Sequence record: NC_027402.1
DNA length: 64,000 nt
Strand: one strand, 5' to 3'
Shown: positions 14,807 through 21,488 of the stretch, piece by piece
Layout of the letters: each line of letters starts with the position of its first letter
Position numbering within the stretch: position 1 is the first letter of the stretch
Position numbers and translations under genes: made by a program
The notes under the pieces: model-generated
What the model saw: the letters and a program-made list of their open reading frames with translations, nothing else
Database searches by the model: none
What the model was told of the DNA's origin: nothing

Positions 14807-14830
14807 CCTACCTCCCCGAAGGGAGGTAGG
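14807..14830. terminator. Bidirectional terminator ending the radical SAM/tail-fibre operon
   Basis: CCTACCTCCC-CGAA-GGGAGGTAGG with an A tract before and a T tract after. Confidence 0.75.
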
Positions 14831-14847: not shown

Positions 14848-15519
14848 TTACATGCCGAGAGATTCGGACAATGTTTTTAATCCAGTGTAATCGCGCTTTT
14901 CAGCTAACTCACGGATTTGGCGTTTGTTATCTGCCATTGCTGAGTGCAACACCTGGTCACGTGCAACAATAGCGCCCAACAACGCTTTACATTGGTCTAC
15001 TGTAAACGGACTGTGCTTAGTATTCAGCGTATCGAGCCAGTATTCTGGTGCGGTATCTGCCTGAATGTATTGACCGAGGATGGTACGCGACGATTCATCG
15101 GCTTGAAAGTGACTACCTTCAAACTCGATATAACCATGACGCTCATCTTCGTACCGGTGGTCAAGTTCCAACAGCATCTTCTGCACGTCTTCGTAAATGT
15201 AACGTGCGGTAGATTTCAGATTCCCGCGAATTTCGTCGAGGTCAATCTCCAGCACATTAGCAATGAACTCTTTCGTGCGTTTCAATGTGAAGTTAGCTTC
15301 AATCTCCGACATCTCATACAGCTTCATGCGTGCCAGGGCTTCTTTATCAGACATCCCTTCGATGAGATGATAATGGAGCAGAGCGCAAAAGCCTGTACGG
15401 CCCTGATCCTGCGCACCGATTCGTTCCATGAAATTACCGTGACGATCAATCGGCAAATCACGCTGGAAATAACGGGCGCGGATCTCTTCGTTCGTTAAGC
15501 TTTTGTCAGTAACAGACAT
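14848..15519 (-). CDS. Protein with C-terminal DUF4376-like (tail-fibre assembly-associated) domain
   Basis: GYIEFEGSHFQADESSR...WLDTLN....FTVDQCKALLGAI resembles DUF4376 as I recall it. Confidence 0.55.
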   Translation of the reverse strand: MSVTDKSLTNEEIRARYFQRDLPIDRHGNFMERIGAQDQGRTGFCALLHYHLIEGMSDKEALARMKLYEMSEIEANFTLKRTKEFIANVLEIDLDEIRGNLKSTARYIYEDVQKMLLELDHRYEDERHGYIEFEGSHFQADESSRTILGQYIQADTAPEYWLDTLNTKHSPFTVDQCKALLGAIVARDQVLHSAMADNKRQIRELAEKRDYTGLKTLSESLGM

Positions 15520-16061
15520 TCGTCCTCCTCAATCAGGCCAAGTTCTAACAACAAACCGAAGTCCAGCATCTGGAAGTCCTGATCGAGGTTACCGGCCCAC
15601 AACAGAGAAATGTTGTGTTGCTCTTCTTCTTCCAACTGCGGGAGCAGGTGTTCTTCGAAGATTTGACGCTCTGTGTAATAAGCGTCAACCGGGTTATTGG
15701 AGCGTAAGTTACGAATACGCATCCGCGGGAAAGACAAGCCCAAAGCCACTAAACTTTCAGGACTGGCTTCATCAATAGAGTGACGTAGCAGTTCGATTTT
15801 GTGGCGTGGGTATGCAAGCAGTCGCTTCTCAAAGCCAGGGTTGCGCTTTTCGATTTCCGCGACAGACTCGTGTCCTTTCTCAACGCAGTAGACCGGGATC
15901 ATCACATTCAGCCCGTATTTAATCAACAGGCTTTGGATTTCATCAGTGAAGTCTTCCCCTGCCACAATTGCGTGCACATTGTACAGCTTGCTTTTGCGCA
16001 GGAAGCGATCGACCAAGTGCAGTTTACGCTTCGTAAAATTGTGAATCAGTATTGACTTCAT
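15495..16061 (-). CDS. Hypothetical protein in radical SAM operon (188 aa)
   Basis: Start moved to MKSILIH (GGAG SD); overlaps both neighbours. Confidence 0.6.
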   Translation of the reverse strand: MKSILIHNFTKRKLHLVDRFLRKSKLYNVHAIVAGEDFTDEIQSLLIKYGLNVMIPVYCVEKGHESVAEIEKRNPGFEKRLLAYPRHKIELLRHSIDEASPESLVALGLSFPRMRIRNLRSNNPVDAYYTERQIFEEHLLPQLEEEEQHNISLLWAGNLDQDFQMLDFGLLLELGLIEEDECLLLTKA

Positions 16062-17352
16062 TCTGGGCTCCGTTTTGTAATTTTTCTGCTTCAGCACGTT
16101 GGCGTACACAACGTGAACAATAGCACATGGATTTATCATGCAAATCTGATGCGCGGGTCGTACCAGTTTTCTGATACCAATATTCCGCCGCCATCAGCTT
16201 CGCAGTAGTCCAACCACACTGACGACGCTCGGCGTGATACGCTTTACGGTCTTCCAGTGTACCTTCACCGTTTTCGTACGATGCTGCTGCGCAGCTACCG
16301 CAGCTGTGTTTCATCGGACACCCTAAACAGGTTTCTGGGTAGTTGGTGTACTGCGTTTGAATCTCTTCTAACAGCTTACCACCGTCCAGGCTCACAAACT
16401 CACGACCGACCAGTTCTGCTACAGCAGAACGGGAAGTTACCGTGGACATGAAACGGTTACAACCGTAAATCTTGCGATCAAAGCCGAGACAGGTCATGTG
16501 CGTCAACGTACCGCAGTACGGTTTCAGGCGTTCTGGGTCGAGACGAACAGAGTCGTCATGTAAGAGTTTGTCACGCCAATCCGGGTCCCAAGTTGCCATA
16601 AAGTTCAGGCCATCCGGGATGATGTGTGTAATCGTGTTACGCGGGTTGGTGTGCAGACCCTTCTCAATCCAGTAGTCCATCACGTCCATCATCTGGTTCG
16701 CGATATCCAACGCCATATGGCGCGGCAGGATATCTTCGTACGTTACGTTACCAGAAATGGTACCACCGCCGGACATGTCAATTAACGATTTCATGCTGGC
16801 GGCATAGTGCGGCAATGTATCGATCGTAAACGTCGCCTTTACGCCCAGTTCAGCGATGCCAACACTCTTCAGATAATTGTAACCGCGTACCGCAGCTTCG
16901 TACGACCCTTCACGCGTCGTGGTAAAGATACGATATTTGTCATGGACTTCAGGTAAACCATCGATGGAGACCCCAATAGACAGTTTGTCTTTCCAGCGCT
17001 CGATAATTTCTTTGTTCAGCGGACGGTCCAGAAGTGTACCGTTCGTGGAGATACTGAACATATACGGGCGATTGTGTTCTGCGCATAACTTCTCTGCGGT
17101 TTCAAAGGCCGCCAAAAGAAGTTTAGGCTGCATGAACGGCTCACCACCGATGATATCGATGATGACTTCAACGTTCGGGATATCTTTATCACGCTCGAAA
17201 CAAGCGTGGATAAAATCAATCACGTCTGCTACTTTGTTGTTACGAGGATATTTACGCTCGTAGCAGTATTCGCAGTCCAGGTTACATGACAGGTTAGTCA
17301 CAACCTGATACGTGCGTGGTGTGTACTGGATTTGCTGTTCGCTGTTACTCAT
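16024..17352 (-). CDS. Radical SAM/SPASM peptide maturase, CXXX-repeat-target type (TIGR04115-like)
   Basis: CNLDCEYC (CX3CX2C), GGEP, STNGTLL, SIDG; SPASM-type YCG..C....IYGC...CLGCPMKHSCGSC...C. Confidence 0.9.
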   Translation of the reverse strand: MSNSEQQIQYTPRTYQVVTNLSCNLDCEYCYERKYPRNNKVADVIDFIHACFERDKDIPNVEVIIDIIGGEPFMQPKLLLAAFETAEKLCAEHNRPYMFSISTNGTLLDRPLNKEIIERWKDKLSIGVSIDGLPEVHDKYRIFTTTREGSYEAAVRGYNYLKSVGIAELGVKATFTIDTLPHYAASMKSLIDMSGGGTISGNVTYEDILPRHMALDIANQMMDVMDYWIEKGLHTNPRNTITHIIPDGLNFMATWDPDWRDKLLHDDSVRLDPERLKPYCGTLTHMTCLGFDRKIYGCNRFMSTVTSRSAVAELVGREFVSLDGGKLLEEIQTQYTNYPETCLGCPMKHSCGSCAAASYENGEGTLEDRKAYHAERRQCGWTTAKLMAAEYWYQKTGTTRASDLHDKSMCYCSRCVRQRAEAEKLQNGAQNEVNTDSQFYEA

Positions 17353-18259
17353 TGTTCGCCGCCCGTTTACGCTTAGCAGAAATTACACGGTTGATGTAGT
17401 TATACGCATCAACGCCGATAGAACGCGCCAGGCGATTACAGCCGACTTCCAATATCTCTGGCGCGTTCTGAATTTGCTCCTGCGTACCGTCGGCGTTAAG
17501 CCACAGCACTTCACTGCACGTGTTGCACTCGGTATCGAACATTTTACTGATTGCAAGCCCACATTCAGAATCGTTCTGCATGTTAAGGCGTTCGATATTG
17601 TCGAGTATTTTCCAATACCCGTACATGAAGTTCATGACGTGGTCCGGCGATAACGGTTTCGGCATCATCGCATCAAACAACAACGACACACCACCTGGAC
17701 GGTAATGATAGATTGCTCGGTGCAGCTCGATGAAATCTTCGTACCAGCGTTTATCACCTAACTGGTCACGCGTCATCACACCCCAGGTGTAATAGTTGTC
17801 CAGCTCGTACAGCACTTCCAGCGCTTCATGATTACCACCGTTTACAAAGTTCATAAACGGACGTTCCGACTTCTTGTAGCCGTCAATGGACACAAAGATA
17901 AGGTCGAACTGTTTCAGCAACGGCAGATGTGATTTACGCATCTTTAAACCGTTGGTGTACATGTGATGACGGAGGTTCGGATGAGACTCCTTCAACTCGT
18001 TCACGAAGTCTTCAATCTTGCGCTGCGCTAACAGCGGCTCACCACCCGTCCAATGAATCTCACCGATATCCGGATTCTTCTCTAAAATCGAGAGAATCTC
18101 TTCACGTTGAAACTCACGAGAAGTATCTTCTCTATCCATGTAATAAGCCCCTCCACAGAAGCTACAGTCTAAGTTACACTTAGAAGTTGCGACAACCGAC
18201 AGAATTGACGGTTTGTCGTACAGTTCAGACGAGATCCTGGATTCTACTTGATCTGTCAT
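17345..18259 (-). CDS. Second, shorter radical SAM enzyme
   Basis: CNLDCSFC, WTGGEPLL, YTNG, VSIDG; only CNTC...C at the C-terminus. Confidence 0.88.
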   Translation of the reverse strand: MTDQVESRISSELYDKPSILSVVATSKCNLDCSFCGGAYYMDREDTSREFQREEILSILEKNPDIGEIHWTGGEPLLAQRKIEDFVNELKESHPNLRHHMYTNGLKMRKSHLPLLKQFDLIFVSIDGYKKSERPFMNFVNGGNHEALEVLYELDNYYTWGVMTRDQLGDKRWYEDFIELHRAIYHYRPGGVSLLFDAMMPKPLSPDHVMNFMYGYWKILDNIERLNMQNDSECGLAISKMFDTECNTCSEVLWLNADGTQEQIQNAPEILEVGCNRLARSIGVDAYNYINRVISAKRKRAANNE

Positions 18260-18280: not shown

Positions 18281-19168
18281 TTAAATATAATCAATGGCGA
18301 ATAAAGGATCTTCGTCTACATTAGCGCCAGGCACCAGTAACATCGGGTCGTGATAGGCAGCTAAAATTTTGTTCAAGTCGGCATGTCTTTCGTTCAAGCG
18401 TTTCAAATCGGCCAACGTTACCGAACGACTACGAATCTCAGAAACAGCTTCTGCTTCTTCTTTCGTTAAATCCACCTTCGTTAAGAGGAAGCTTACCAGC
18501 TTACTCAAATCCGCTTCTGTCGCCGGGTAGTCCCCATATCGGGTTTGAACCAGGTGTTGCATCCACGGCTTACGAATGCGTTTGGTGATTTCAAAATCGT
18601 CAGTCAACGCATACCAGACAGAACGCTTTTTATCCCACACGAACTTATAGCTATACGCCATCATGTCCGCTAAACGGGTGATGCCGAGTTCTTTATATCC
18701 CTCGATATCGATGTACGGTTCGGTGTCGAAATACGTTTCCGTATCGGCAGGTACCAGTACAAAGTAGTAAGGGAACGAGCCCAGATAGTCCGGACTCCAC
18801 CAACGGCGCGCCATCGGTTTTGCTTCGAGTTCGTCAAACGGTGTAAACATCAGTTCTAAATCGACACTGTTGTTCAGAATCCCTTCACTGAAGAAATACT
18901 TACCGTCAACCAACACGCCGCGAGAGTTACCATCGCCGTTAAAGATAACGATGGCCTCTGCAACCATATCACGGATCTTAAACGTATTTTCTACGGTGTA
19001 GTTCTTCTTGTCGGTCAAGAAGCGACCACGAACCTTTGGCCACTCACCAGGAATCTGTGCAATCAGTCTGACTTTGTCAGCGAGGTGTGCACGCACCGAA
19101 TCTGGGGAAGATAGATGCAGCGGGTGGTTGAATGTGGTTTTATACGCAAGATGCAAATCGTTTTTCAT
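18281..19168 (-). CDS. Hypothetical protein between the CXXX peptides and the radical SAM genes
   Basis: 295 aa ORF with GGAG SD; no family recognised. Confidence 0.6.
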   Translation of the reverse strand: MKNDLHLAYKTTFNHPLHLSSPDSVRAHLADKVRLIAQIPGEWPKVRGRFLTDKKNYTVENTFKIRDMVAEAIVIFNGDGNSRGVLVDGKYFFSEGILNNSVDLELMFTPFDELEAKPMARRWWSPDYLGSFPYYFVLVPADTETYFDTEPYIDIEGYKELGITRLADMMAYSYKFVWDKKRSVWYALTDDFEITKRIRKPWMQHLVQTRYGDYPATEADLSKLVSFLLTKVDLTKEEAEAVSEIRSRSVTLADLKRLNERHADLNKILAAYHDPMLLVPGANVDEDPLFAIDYI

Positions 19169-19190: not shown

Positions 19191-19397
19191 TTATCGATTC
19201 CCCGCTCCACGGCTACAGCTTCCGCTGCAGGACCAGCTACACCCACCATTACAGTTATAGTGAGAAAGCGGTAAGCCAGCCAGGTTATTTGTGGTCGACA
19301 CGGTGCCCTGGTTAGCGATATAGTTGTTTGCCTGTGCGGTTGTAATGTAACCTTCTGCCGTAACGAGACGGTTTCGAATAGTCTTGAGACTGATCAC
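19191..19397 (-). CDS. CXXX-repeat precursor-like peptide 3 (68 aa, 4 Cys)
   Basis: GGAGG SD and GTG start; 48-aa leader ISLKTIRNRL..., core CNGGCSWSCSGSCSRGAGNR. Confidence 0.8.
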   Translation of the reverse strand: MISLKTIRNRLVTAEGYITTAQANNYIANQGTVSTTNNLAGLPLSHYNCNGGCSWSCSGSCSRGAGNR

Positions 19398-19412
19398 ATA
19401 AGCCTCCGTCAG

Positions 19413-19817
19413 TTAGGAGTTAGGACCTGAACAACCACCAGAGCACGCACCTGAGCAGTTTGCGGAGCAGGATTTACCACAACCCCCAGAACAGCTGCCT
19501 GTGCACGTGCCGCTACAACCACCAGAGCACGAAGAGCTACAGCCCGTGCAGCTGCTGCTACAGCCTGATACACAGTTTGCCGAACAAGTCGACCCACAAC
19601 CGCCCGTAGCAGACCCAGTACATCCGCCAGAACAACTCGAGCAACTAAAAGAGCATGTTCCACCACAGTCATAGTGCGAACGACCTTGACCTGCGAACAA
19701 GTCAGCGTTATTCGTAGCTTTATTGCGAATGTAGTTTTGCACATTCGTGGTATTCTTTAGAGCGTTTGCATCGATCGTGTTTAATCGGTTATTCAGTTCT
19801 TTTAATCCAATTGCCAT
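19413..19817 (-). CDS. CXXX-repeat precursor-like peptide 2 (134 aa, 20 Cys)
   Basis: 50-aa leader, then a Cys/Ser/Gly core starting CGGTCSFSC. Confidence 0.88.
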   Translation of the reverse strand: MAIGLKELNNRLNTIDANALKNTTNVQNYIRNKATNNADLFAGQGRSHYDCGGTCSFSCSSCSGGCTGSATGGCGSTCSANCVSGCSSSCTGCSSSCSGGCSGTCTGSCSGGCGKSCSANCSGACSGGCSGPNS

Positions 19818-19827
19818 TTAATCCCCC

Positions 19828-20220
19828 TTAGCGACCTGAACAGCCGCCGGAGCAGGCCCCGGAACAACTGGAAGAACATGAGCCACCGCAACCACCTGTG
19901 CAGTTACCGGTACAGCTACTACTGCAACCACCAGAACAACCAGAGCAACCAGAACAGTTACCGCCACACGTCGAAGAACAGCTACCGATACAAGAAGCAG
20001 AACAGCTTCCTGAACAGCTCGAACAGCCATGCGAGCAACCGTTAGAGCACGTCCAAGAACATGTCCCGCCGCAATCTAGCTGTGCTTTCGTCCAACCCCC
20101 AAATCGGTCTGCCGCGTTATGGGCTTTAGAGGCCACTTGCGCGTCGATACGGGGGCCTGTCGCCATGTTAGCTTCGACTATCTGGACGCGGTTTCTGACG
20201 TCTTTAATAGATATCGCCAT
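19828..20220 (-). CDS. CXXX-repeat precursor-like peptide 1 (130 aa, 21 Cys)
   Basis: AGGAAG SD; 49-aa leader, then a Cys/Ser/Gly core starting CGGTCSWTC. Confidence 0.88.
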   Translation of the reverse strand: MAISIKDVRNRVQIVEANMATGPRIDAQVASKAHNAADRFGGWTKAQLDCGGTCSWTCSNGCSHGCSSCSGSCSASCIGSCSSTCGGNCSGCSGCSGGCSSSCTGNCTGGCGGSCSSSCSGACSGGCSGR

Positions 20221-20241
20221 TACGCTTCCTTAAAAAGTAGA

Positions 20242-20278
20242 ACGAGCGGACTATGTCCATAAACATAGTCCGGCTCGT
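20242..20278 (-). promoter_or_regulatory. Long bulged hairpin immediately upstream of the CXXX peptide genes
   Basis: - strand ACGAGC-C-GGACTATGT-TTATGG-ACATAGTCC-GCTCGT, then TCTACTTTTT; contains TATG twice. Confidence 0.55.
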
Positions 20279-20285
20279 AAACAAG

Positions 20286-21488
20286 TTACTTAGTACCCGC
20301 TTCAGCTTGAACATCGTCGCGCGAGGTGAGGTTGTTGTTGACGTGAACAGCAGCCTGCACAACACCGCCATACTGTTTATGGAGGTAATTCGGGTGTGGG
20401 TTATCCGCAGCCGCATGGTTCGCCAGATTCTGGTTTGCCTGCGAAATTGCGTTGGTGTTGTTTACAACCTGAGTTTTAAGACTGTTGATTTGTCCTTGCA
20501 GGTTATCAATTTGCTGTTGGAAGTCTTTGCCCTGATTCTCAAGATCCGTGACGCGCTGATTCGTTTCATTCAGTGCAGACTGAAGATCGTTAACCTTCTT
20601 CTGTAATTGCAACACCAGAGAATTAAGGTTAGCTAATGCTAACGACATTTTCTGGTAATTTTGAGCAACTACATTAAGCTGGTCGTTCCACGCGGCTAAC
20701 GAAGCCACAACTGCATCGATGCGTTGCCCCAACGCCGTGTCTGCTGCTCTTAAGTCGCCGATATCTTTGATGGTGGCGTCAATGGCAGTCTGTACACTTT
20801 GAATCAAAGCACGAATCTCCGTCTCCGTCAGGCCATTAACCTGATGAATGTCGAGATTGTGTACGTTACCTTCGGCGTTGATGTGGGTATTTAAGGCATC
20901 GAGGAAGTCGTTTTTCAGACCGTCCAGAATACCTTTAATTTCTTCCAGCTGTACTGCAGAGCCGGAGTTAATCGCATCTTTAATCCCCGCGAGTACGGTA
21001 ATGATATACTCAAAACCGTAGATATCGCCAAGGTCTTTATACGTCGGTGCGGACGGGAACGTATCGGGTACGTTCCGAAGATCCTTGAAGTCCACCACAC
21101 GGTCTTCAATTTTCAAAGATGCAATCGCTTGTCGGATGCCTTCGACGTTCGCGGACTGAAAACCACCAACGACTTGCGCAGAGACTTCGATATCAGTAGG
21201 AATGGCCGAGTTAGTTACCACCACACCCATGACCACTTCGCGGTTCTTGGTCATTTTCTGATATGCAGTATGTGCAAAAATCAGCTCGTAGTCTGTACCG
21301 CGTTTGTACGGGTAGACACCTGGTTTATTCGCAGCCGCCAAGCGGAAGGTATCCGCGTAGAAAGCTCCGTCAGGAAATGCAAAAGCCCGGTTAACTTTAC
21401 CAGAACCTAACGTAATACGCCGCGTAACGGCGTTCGACGTTAATGTCCCGGTAAGGTCAAGCGGGTACTGATAAATGATTTCGGCCAT
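20286..21488 (-). CDS. Coiled-coil tail-fibre-like protein (400 aa)
   Basis: Start moved to MAEII (AAGGAG SD); YPLDLTG N-terminus like the large fibres, long heptad region, HAAADNPHPNY fibre motif. Confidence 0.7.
   Translation of the reverse strand: MAEIIYQYPLDLTGTLTSNAVTRRITLGSGKVNRAFAFPDGAFYADTFRLAAANKPGVYPYKRGTDYELIFAHTAYQKMTKNREVVMGVVVTNSAIPTDIEVSAQVVGGFQSANVEGIRQAIASLKIEDRVVDFKDLRNVPDTFPSAPTYKDLGDIYGFEYIITVLAGIKDAINSGSAVQLEEIKGILDGLKNDFLDALNTHINAEGNVHNLDIHQVNGLTETEIRALIQSVQTAIDATIKDIGDLRAADTALGQRIDAVVASLAAWNDQLNVVAQNYQKMSLALANLNSLVLQLQKKVNDLQSALNETNQRVTDLENQGKDFQQQIDNLQGQINSLKTQVVNNTNAISQANQNLANHAAADNPHPNYLHKQYGGVVQAAVHVNNNLTSRDDVQAEAGTK

Follow-up and report, generated by a model that had tools for sequence, protein, structure and literature searches.

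CXXX-repeat radical S-adenosylmethionine (SAM) systems and thioether-forming SPASM enzymes are the closest described parallels to a locus of Salmonella phage SPN3US in which three Cys-repeat genes, designated here pepA, pepB and pepC, lie near two radical SAM genes in a tail-fibre module. Among the thioether-forming enzymes, QhpD is a SPASM radical SAM enzyme that makes intrachain thioethers in the Cys-containing protein QhpC, a subunit that is kept in a larger complex. Another enzyme, PapB, is described as crosslinking a repeated C-x3-D motif through thioethers, in a ladder-like series (PMC12373016). The window analysed here is the whole 64,000-nt stretch corresponding to bases 124001-188000 of SPN3US, with 100% identity to JN641803 across 139400-145600; unless a contig is named, positions refer to this window and equal the SPN3US record position minus 124000.

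The SPN3US set shares with the CXXX-repeat system (TIGR04114/TIGR04115) long stretches in which every fourth residue is a Cys and an adjoining SPASM-type radical SAM enzyme, gp163, for which TIGR04115 is the best match. It differs from that system in being phage-borne and located in a tail-fibre module, in having a second radical SAM enzyme (gp164) and gp165, in the fibre-like N-terminal parts of its Cys proteins and in scores that fall under the curated cut-offs. The 442-aa product of gp163 (16024..17352, minus strand) is a radical SAM/SPASM-type peptide or protein maturase (PF04055) whose best NCBIfam match, TIGR04115 (CXXX-repeat maturase), reaches 125.6 bits, below the cut-off of 350, as befits a distant relative. 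A likeness is also seen with PapB/freyrasin and the ranthipeptide/SCIFF maturases (CteB, Tte1186), since gp163 aligns with the PapB model almost end to end (profile positions 12-319 of 330; 113.6 bits for a cut-off of 340) and has further matches to geopeptide, HxsB and SCIFF maturases. Unlike in that group, the SPN3US repeats are of the C-[S/T]-G-x type, without an Asp/Glu acceptor, and the substrates are apparently structural and not small secreted peptides. The match to TIGR03906 is weak, its 55.5 bits standing far under a cut-off of 453, which sets gp163 apart from QhpD, while QhpC, with its Cys-Asp/Glu links, belongs to an enzyme as a subunit and is neither repetitive nor viral. Judged from these sequence matches, pepA-C and gp163 form a phage-borne set distantly related to the CXXX-repeat system, accompanied by a second radical SAM enzyme and by gp165. 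The pairing of peptide and enzyme is of a known kind; no precedent for enzyme-installed crosslinks in phage fibres, or for systematic CXXX/radical SAM use on tail-fibre proteins, was found in the searchable literature.

Our in silico analyses indicate, with a probability of ca. 0.55, that pepA, pepB and pepC encode structural tail-fibre proteins crosslinked by radical SAM enzymes, and not leader-plus-core antibiotic precursors. This reading is put forward mainly because fibre-type proteins of unrelated phages end in the Cys domain and are encoded in tail modules, with homologues of gp163, gp164 and gp165 next to them. It is further favoured by C-terminal extensions of pepC, by a number of Cys that is fixed in pepA, by purifying selection and by an operon without peptidase or exporter.

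The three Cys-repeat genes are located directly 3' of the virion-protein genes gp167-gp170, inside the baseplate/tail-fibre module. The first, pepA (19828..20220, minus strand), encodes 130 aa with 21 Cys and is preceded by the Shine-Dalgarno sequence AGGAAG; pepB (19413..19817, minus strand) encodes 134 aa with 20 Cys and has the same architecture, and pepC (19191..19397, minus strand) starts with GTG and encodes 68 aa with 4 Cys. A Shine-Dalgarno sequence of its own is present upstream of each of them. The sole PHROG match of their products is phrog_6085, a family of unknown function (E-values of 7.5e-41, 3e-41 and 2.7e-24, respectively), and no Pfam family was found on any of the three. Both pepA and pepC are without annotation in SPN3US, and the only gene called in this area by GenBank and RefSeq, "gp166" (SPN3US_0166 / ACQ60_gp100, 19409-19744), is a 111-aa Ala/Val/Arg-rich open reading frame (ORF) lying in the wrong frame over pepB. 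The Cys frame and the non-repetitive N-termini (M-A-I/V-S-L-K...) are kept in the Erwinia phages Wellington, EarlPhillipIV and ChrisDB, in which annotators often chose other frames. In the Cys frame, the ratio of nonsynonymous to synonymous substitution rates (dN/dS, NG86 method) ranges from 0.14 to 0.20 in the N-terminal part and from 0.04 to 0.18 in the core. Because the frame is conserved across genera, dN/dS is low, each gene has its Shine-Dalgarno sequence and all match phrog_6085, pepA, pepB and pepC are real genes in the Cys frame, under purifying selection. Several related phage records have the same wrong-frame call, or opposite-strand ORFs, over the Cys genes. In the Salmonella phages SPFM1, 5, 7-10, 12, 14, 15 and 20 (LR5359xx records), protein matches across the fibre/peptide/gp165 region are fragmentary and of low coverage; the SPFM genomes are elsewhere near-identical to SPN3US and this region is either rearranged or poorly sequenced over the Cys repeats. 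A search of the SPN3US genome for copies of the leader elsewhere returned only pepA and pepB.

In pepA, ca. 49 N-terminal residues, composed of a short helix and a fibre-type N-A-x-x-F/L-G-G junction, are followed by 21 Cys arranged in C-[ST]-G-x repeats. The N-terminal part of pepC is as in pepA and pepB and is accompanied by the C-x-G-x-C-S-W motif, but this protein has only 4 Cys. Within the long-repeat proteins (20-21 Cys), the spacing between Cys is nearly always 3, with a few occurrences of 2 and a single 7 in pepB, and Ser or Thr stands directly after Cys in 78% of the repeats. Lys and Arg occur in the N-terminal 45-50 residues and are nearly absent from the cores. When compared to TIGR04114, which models the CXXX radical SAM target repeat, pepA, pepB and pepC score 19.6, 17.1 and 13.7 bits, respectively, so that none reaches the cut-off of 20, pepA being marginal and pepB and pepC clearly lower. 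The trio is present in all 17 SPN3US-like metagenomic loci, in which pepA has 21 Cys without exception (17/17) despite ca. 50% divergence, and in which the counts range from 20 to 23 for pepB and from 2 to 4 for pepC. In two lineages, pepC orthologues of 147 and 210 aa display an extra beta-rich C-terminal extension of 80-145 aa; these are P0059, found in L017 (a 222-kb contig), and P0068, found in L020 and L021 from two samples, all on contigs that are otherwise syntenic with SPN3US. The extension gave no match by tblastn in 50,697 phage records.

When 1.84 billion representative proteins were searched with a profile built on the first 58 residues, small homologues were retrieved together with three proteins of 211-226 aa (P0079, P0084 and P0085) that start with an N-terminal domain and a coil and continue into this segment and CXXX repeats. 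Two different N-terminal domains are found among the three, and those of P0079 and P0084 match phrog_5073 "tail fiber protein" (E-values of 1.6e-5 to 3.6e-5) and a solved short tail fibre, 8ke9 (E-value of 0.02). The gene encoding P0085 is located after a gpJ-like central fibre gene (phrog_31) and before a radical SAM gene. That of P0079, in L018, is followed by genes for a small radical SAM enzyme (24% identity to gp164), a 234-aa gp165-like protein (local similarity, E-value of 2e-6) and a large radical SAM enzyme having 35% identity to gp163 over 395 aa (E-value of 2e-66). The gene upstream of it (L018:3-629, encoding a protein fragment) ends with a GNVYEW-type motif, as is usual for the receptor-binding domains of phage tail proteins that have an FGE-sulfatase/C-type-lectin fold, and its product is putatively one of these. 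Also among the matches of this profile was a fibre-like protein of 654 aa, which contains nine repeats similar to the first half of the leader. Three repeat proteins of the SprB, RTX and SpaA types (P0067, P0073 and P0083) were rejected as leader homologues, their matches being compositional, and P0056 and P0061 were set aside as artefacts, being judged frameshift or chimeric.

A second scan, in which the gp163 alignment was run against IMG/VR, returned 58 loci. In 21 of the 22 loci L039-L060, whose radical SAM enzymes have 22-37% identity to gp163, an adjacent ORF bears C-terminal CXXX repeats behind an N-terminal part of 65-500 aa. Outside the SPN3US clade, N-terminal parts of 100-500 aa prevail; they are atypical of the leaders of ribosomally synthesised peptides with post-translational modification (RiPPs) and favour a role in fibres. 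The exception is L059, whose contig ends just upstream of the radical SAM gene, and in L060 a second ORF is made of Cys repeats from its first residues onward. In L039, a 568-aa protein with classic fibre repeats is encoded directly after a baseplate-wedge gene and terminates with the junction and 30 Cys; this terminal part can be aligned with the junction seen in SPN3US, N-A-x-x-L-G-G-x5-Y-x-C-x-G-x-C-S-W-x-C. Another example (L040:8085-9632) is a 516-aa RCC1-like beta-propeller protein with a C-terminal CXXX tail, which has three radical SAM genes on its flanks and a baseplate-wedge gene upstream. In L040, L042, L049 and L060, the CXXX protein and the radical SAM enzyme are encoded amid baseplate, tail and tail-fibre PHROGs, and L016 and L039 likewise have theirs in tail/baseplate modules. 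The Cys-repeat domain, this set of radical SAM enzymes and a tail-fibre module recur together across unrelated phages and, on the evidence of the predicted proteins, the Cys domain is in most of these phages the C-terminal end of a fibre-type polypeptide. When 185,579 bacterial and archaeal genomes were scanned with the gp163 alignment, matches were weak and generic for radical SAM enzymes and none of the 80 loci kept had a CXXX ORF, a count limited by the search patterns. In IMG/VR, a second class of Cys-repeat proteins, with C-N-C-N-Y-x-C-T-C units, occurs beside more distant radical SAM genes (L062, L064-L067, L078 and L079); some of these proteins end in S-D-x-R-L-K-x-x-I-x-Y, like the start of fibre S74 intramolecular-chaperone domains, and one has a Gly_rich_2 domain.

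The genes for the Cys proteins and those for the maturases share one operon in SPN3US, as they do in all relatives examined. In gp163, the radical SAM motif CNLDCEYC occupies residues 23-30 and the invariant C-terminal Cys (alignment A4, n=8) are C280, C288, C298, C342, C345, C351, C354 and C379. The second enzyme, gp164 (17345..18259, minus strand), is a 304-aa radical SAM protein (PF04055, E-value of 1e-15; phrog_1802) with CxxxCxxC at residues 28-35 and without a full SPASM domain. Between gp164 and the Cys genes, gp165 (18281..19168, minus strand) encodes a conserved accessory protein of 295 aa (phrog_8030), for which AlphaFold2 gives a predicted local distance difference test (pLDDT) score of 89.6 with an alignment and of 37 from the single sequence. 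Its model had no fold match (best E-value of 0.18 with Foldseek against PDB, best Z of 4.2 in the VIA wide search, ESM Atlas features <=0.84), and a RiPP recognition element (RRE) or PqqD-like unit at residues 175-250 is only a guess, unconfirmed by these fold searches. In L011 (4393-5304) and L012, two SPN3US-like IMG/VR contigs, an extra gp164-like radical SAM gene of 303 aa is located between pepA and pepB, a placement that links enzymes and peptides; the site behind gp165 where gp164 normally lies is still filled there, by a 312-aa ORF.

Upstream of pepA, gp167 (20286..21488, minus strand) encodes a virion fibre protein of 400 aa, when counted from the annotated start, that matches phrog_2163 "virion structural protein" (E-value of 5e-109). 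It is composed of an N-terminal domain, a long coiled coil, with coiled-coil family matches covering ca. residues 200-375, and a conserved 45-aa C-terminus formed by an H..ADNPH..Y motif and a GG..V..V segment. The initial annotation of this area, which was made from the sequence alone, had given gp167 this length and coil and a stop ca. 32 aa past HAAADNPHPNY; ORF and family matches prove it exact, the stop being located precisely 32 residues past the motif. Homologues (54 matches, 225-429 aa) are all of 396-400 aa when full-length, and conservation is 0.71 in the C-terminal 45 residues versus 0.48 in the coil. Such conservation would be expected of a docking surface more than of a tip that binds receptors, the argument being circumstantial. 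The likeness to gp38, which caps gp37 in T2/T6/S16-type phages and had been invoked as an analogue of the Cys proteins, holds in concept only, gp38 being a small Gly/Ser-rich separate tip protein encoded just past the fibre gene. Pfam and PHROGs provide no sequence basis for the analogy, with no sequence or family similarity between gp38 and pepA-C, and gp38 is built of polyglycine-II sandwiches, without Cys ladders or modifying enzymes. The S74 chaperone of T5 pb1/K1F and the Fe-His needle of T4 gp37 are also comparable, as specialised C-terminal elements that stabilise or register a trimeric fibre, but in SPN3US the stabilisation would come from enzyme-made covalent crosslinks.

On the minus strand, the operon runs in the order gp169, gp168 (1742 aa), gp167, pepA, pepB, pepC, gp165, gp164, gp163, gp162, gp161 and a terminator. 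Between the gp167 stop and the pepA ribosome-binding site, a stem-loop with a U-rich tract (20244..20278, minus strand) has a minimum free energy of -23.7 kcal/mol and a z of -5.25; a hairpin of differing sequence is found in the equivalent place in five relatives (L003:6935-7003, L004:6944-7003, L005:6936-7003, L017:7125-7195 and L020:7091-7144). By partial termination or by stabilising the mRNA, this hairpin probably adjusts how much gp167 is made relative to the products of the downstream genes. The enzyme block is closed by gp162 (15495..16139, minus strand), annotated as 188 aa, which is conserved (phrog_7988, E-value of 8e-87) and syntenic in every relative compared. The last gene, gp161 (14848..15519, minus strand), encodes a 223-aa DUF4376 protein (PF14301, E-value of 5.3e-9) and is followed by a strong bidirectional terminator at 14807-14830. 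It was correctly anticipated that the operon ends in a DUF4376-like gene, even though gp161 is located outside 19191-21488, and that export genes are lacking, since none of the eight operon proteins scanned with Pfam, NCBIfam and PHROGs belongs to a peptidase or exporter/transporter family.

In CsCl-purified SPN3US virions, gp167 was detected with an SC/M of 1.90 and 70% coverage and peaks in the gel slice expected of a free 45-kDa monomer; gp168-173 are present and gp161-165 are absent (PMC5694885 Suppl. Table 1). The products of gp163, gp164, gp165 and gp162 and the DUF4376 protein are non-structural and, since gp161-165 are absent from virions that contain gp167-173, the enzymes and gp165 most likely act before or during assembly. 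The annotation searched in that study lacked all three Cys ORFs, so that the published proteome is uninformative on pepA, pepB and pepC.

In the mechanism proposed here, each Pep protein would begin with a short helix, pass through a junction of the fibre type (N-A-x-x-L-G-G ... Y-x-C-x-G-x-C-S-W-x-C) and end with a fixed-length C-[S/T]-G-x domain. Late in infection, the Cys repeats would be modified in the cytoplasm by gp163 and gp164, aided by gp165. By analogy with PapB, SCIFF and QhpD, the likeliest chemistry would be a ladder of thioether crosslinks, in repeats that have no Asp/Glu acceptor. This would yield a rigid rod or knob that withstands proteases and reduction and makes up the distal part of a baseplate fibre. 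Its N-terminus would probably dock where gp167 has its conserved C-terminus, and the docked form may be an A/B/C heterotrimer. In this scheme we infer the crosslink chemistry, the incorporation into virions, the docking site on gp167 and the stoichiometry. A broader proposal, which we make tentatively and at slightly less than even odds, is that these proteins represent an undescribed and widespread class of phage fibres, having a distal Cys-repeat rod stapled by phage radical SAM enzymes, and that in SPN3US-like jumbo phages this rod is split into A, B and C subunits carried on gp167.

Several observations weigh against crosslinked fibre proteins. Profiles of the leader and of gp167 have no significant similarity (hhalign probability of 0.5%), and the resemblance that the initial annotation saw between the heptads of the leaders and the gp167 coil comes down to generic heptad composition. 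None of the 54 gp167 matches carries a Cys or receptor domain as a fusion, and migration of gp167 as a monomer makes a covalent gp167-peptide adduct unlikely. The tail-fibre label of the fused N-terminal domains, which is a putative one, depends on weak E-values (1e-5 and 0.02). The strong, conserved hairpin between gp167 and pepA suggests that pepA, pepB and pepC may be expressed below gp167 and grouped with the enzymes, and their products are putative virion components. Finally, a short N-terminus joined to a Cys core, the three paralogues and the matches of gp163 to RiPP maturases fit the picture of a RiPP cluster exactly. The earlier proposal of fibre-associated structural proteins, as opposed to exported bacteriocins, thus stands in part: the fused fibre homologues, the tail-module context, the pepC extensions and the conserved gp167 C-terminus speak for it, whereas the coil resemblance and a gp167-Cys fusion found no support.

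The alternative that survives best, although we consider it rather unlikely, is a phage-borne conventional RiPP cluster of the ranthipeptide-like kind, in which leaders of ca. 50 aa are recognised by gp163/gp164/gp165. The crosslinked cores would be freed at lysis, the leader perhaps being cut by a host protease, and would serve outside the virion as an antimicrobial, a metallophore or a signal. The locus has three short paralogous precursors, with common N-termini and graded cores, beside a SPASM radical SAM enzyme whose top matches are RiPP maturases, and pepA, pepB and pepC score just under the TIGR04114 cut-off. The hairpin also groups the Cys genes with the enzymes, apart from gp167, and the Cys proteins are unreported in virions, though that result is uninformative. 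However, the presumed leader has its homologue within fibre-type proteins, as an internal segment; in other phages, domains of 100-500 aa precede the Cys domain, and the association with baseplate/fibre genes is repeated in at least five unrelated lineages. A precursor role is further at odds with a pepC able to carry a C-terminal extension of 145 aa, with the fixed 21 Cys of pepA, with the lack of peptidase and exporter among the eight operon proteins and with the 0/80 bacterial-genome loci having a CXXX ORF next to gp163 relatives.

It is less probable still that the modified Cys proteins are non-virion assembly factors, i.e. transient scaffolds, chaperones or length rulers for the gp167-gp170 complex that are then discarded like T4 gp38/gp57A. 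Their genes are indeed located among those whose products are missing from the virion (gp161-165), in an operon that ends with a DUF4376 protein and that is followed in relatives by a tail assembly chaperone; the constant number of Cys would fit a ruler, and the hairpin a dosage under that of gp167. In the fused forms, the Cys domain is nonetheless on the fibre polypeptide itself, where it would stay unless cleaved, and none of the CXXX-type proteins showed a cleavage motif.

A metal- or Fe-S-binding function, as in metallothioneins, in which the thiols are free and the radical SAM enzymes act on another substrate, appears very improbable. With ca. 25% Cys and with Ser/Gly spacers, the composition is like that of metal-binding proteins, and trimeric phage fibres such as T4 gp37 and gp12 bind metal ions. 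Against this, unrelated phages keep the CXXX protein, the gp163-like and small radical SAM enzymes and the gp165-like protein in each other's company, L011 has an additional radical SAM gene placed between pepA and pepB, and CXXX repeats are, by the NCBIfam definition, targets of radical SAM enzymes. A chance origin of the ORFs in repetitive, GC-rich DNA could be suspected, since several frames are open over the repeats and the annotators' choice of frame varies between phages; it is refuted by the pattern of conservation, i.e. dN/dS well below 1, N-termini conserved across genera, a Shine-Dalgarno sequence for each gene and a PHROG family match at 1e-41.

Two genes are missed and a third is mis-framed in the reference annotation of SPN3US, and existing proteomic data sets therefore deserve to be searched again. 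If pepA, pepB and pepC are crosslinked tail-fibre proteins, as favoured here, they would be the first case in which radical SAM (RiPP-type) crosslinking is used for a part of the virion, and they would give a biological role to the uncharacterised CXXX-repeat/TIGR04115 family. They would also represent a new route to rigid adsorption organelles resistant to proteases and reductants, of relevance to phage engineering and to stapled-protein scaffolds, and would explain the occurrence of radical SAM genes in the tail modules of SPN3US-like jumbo phages.

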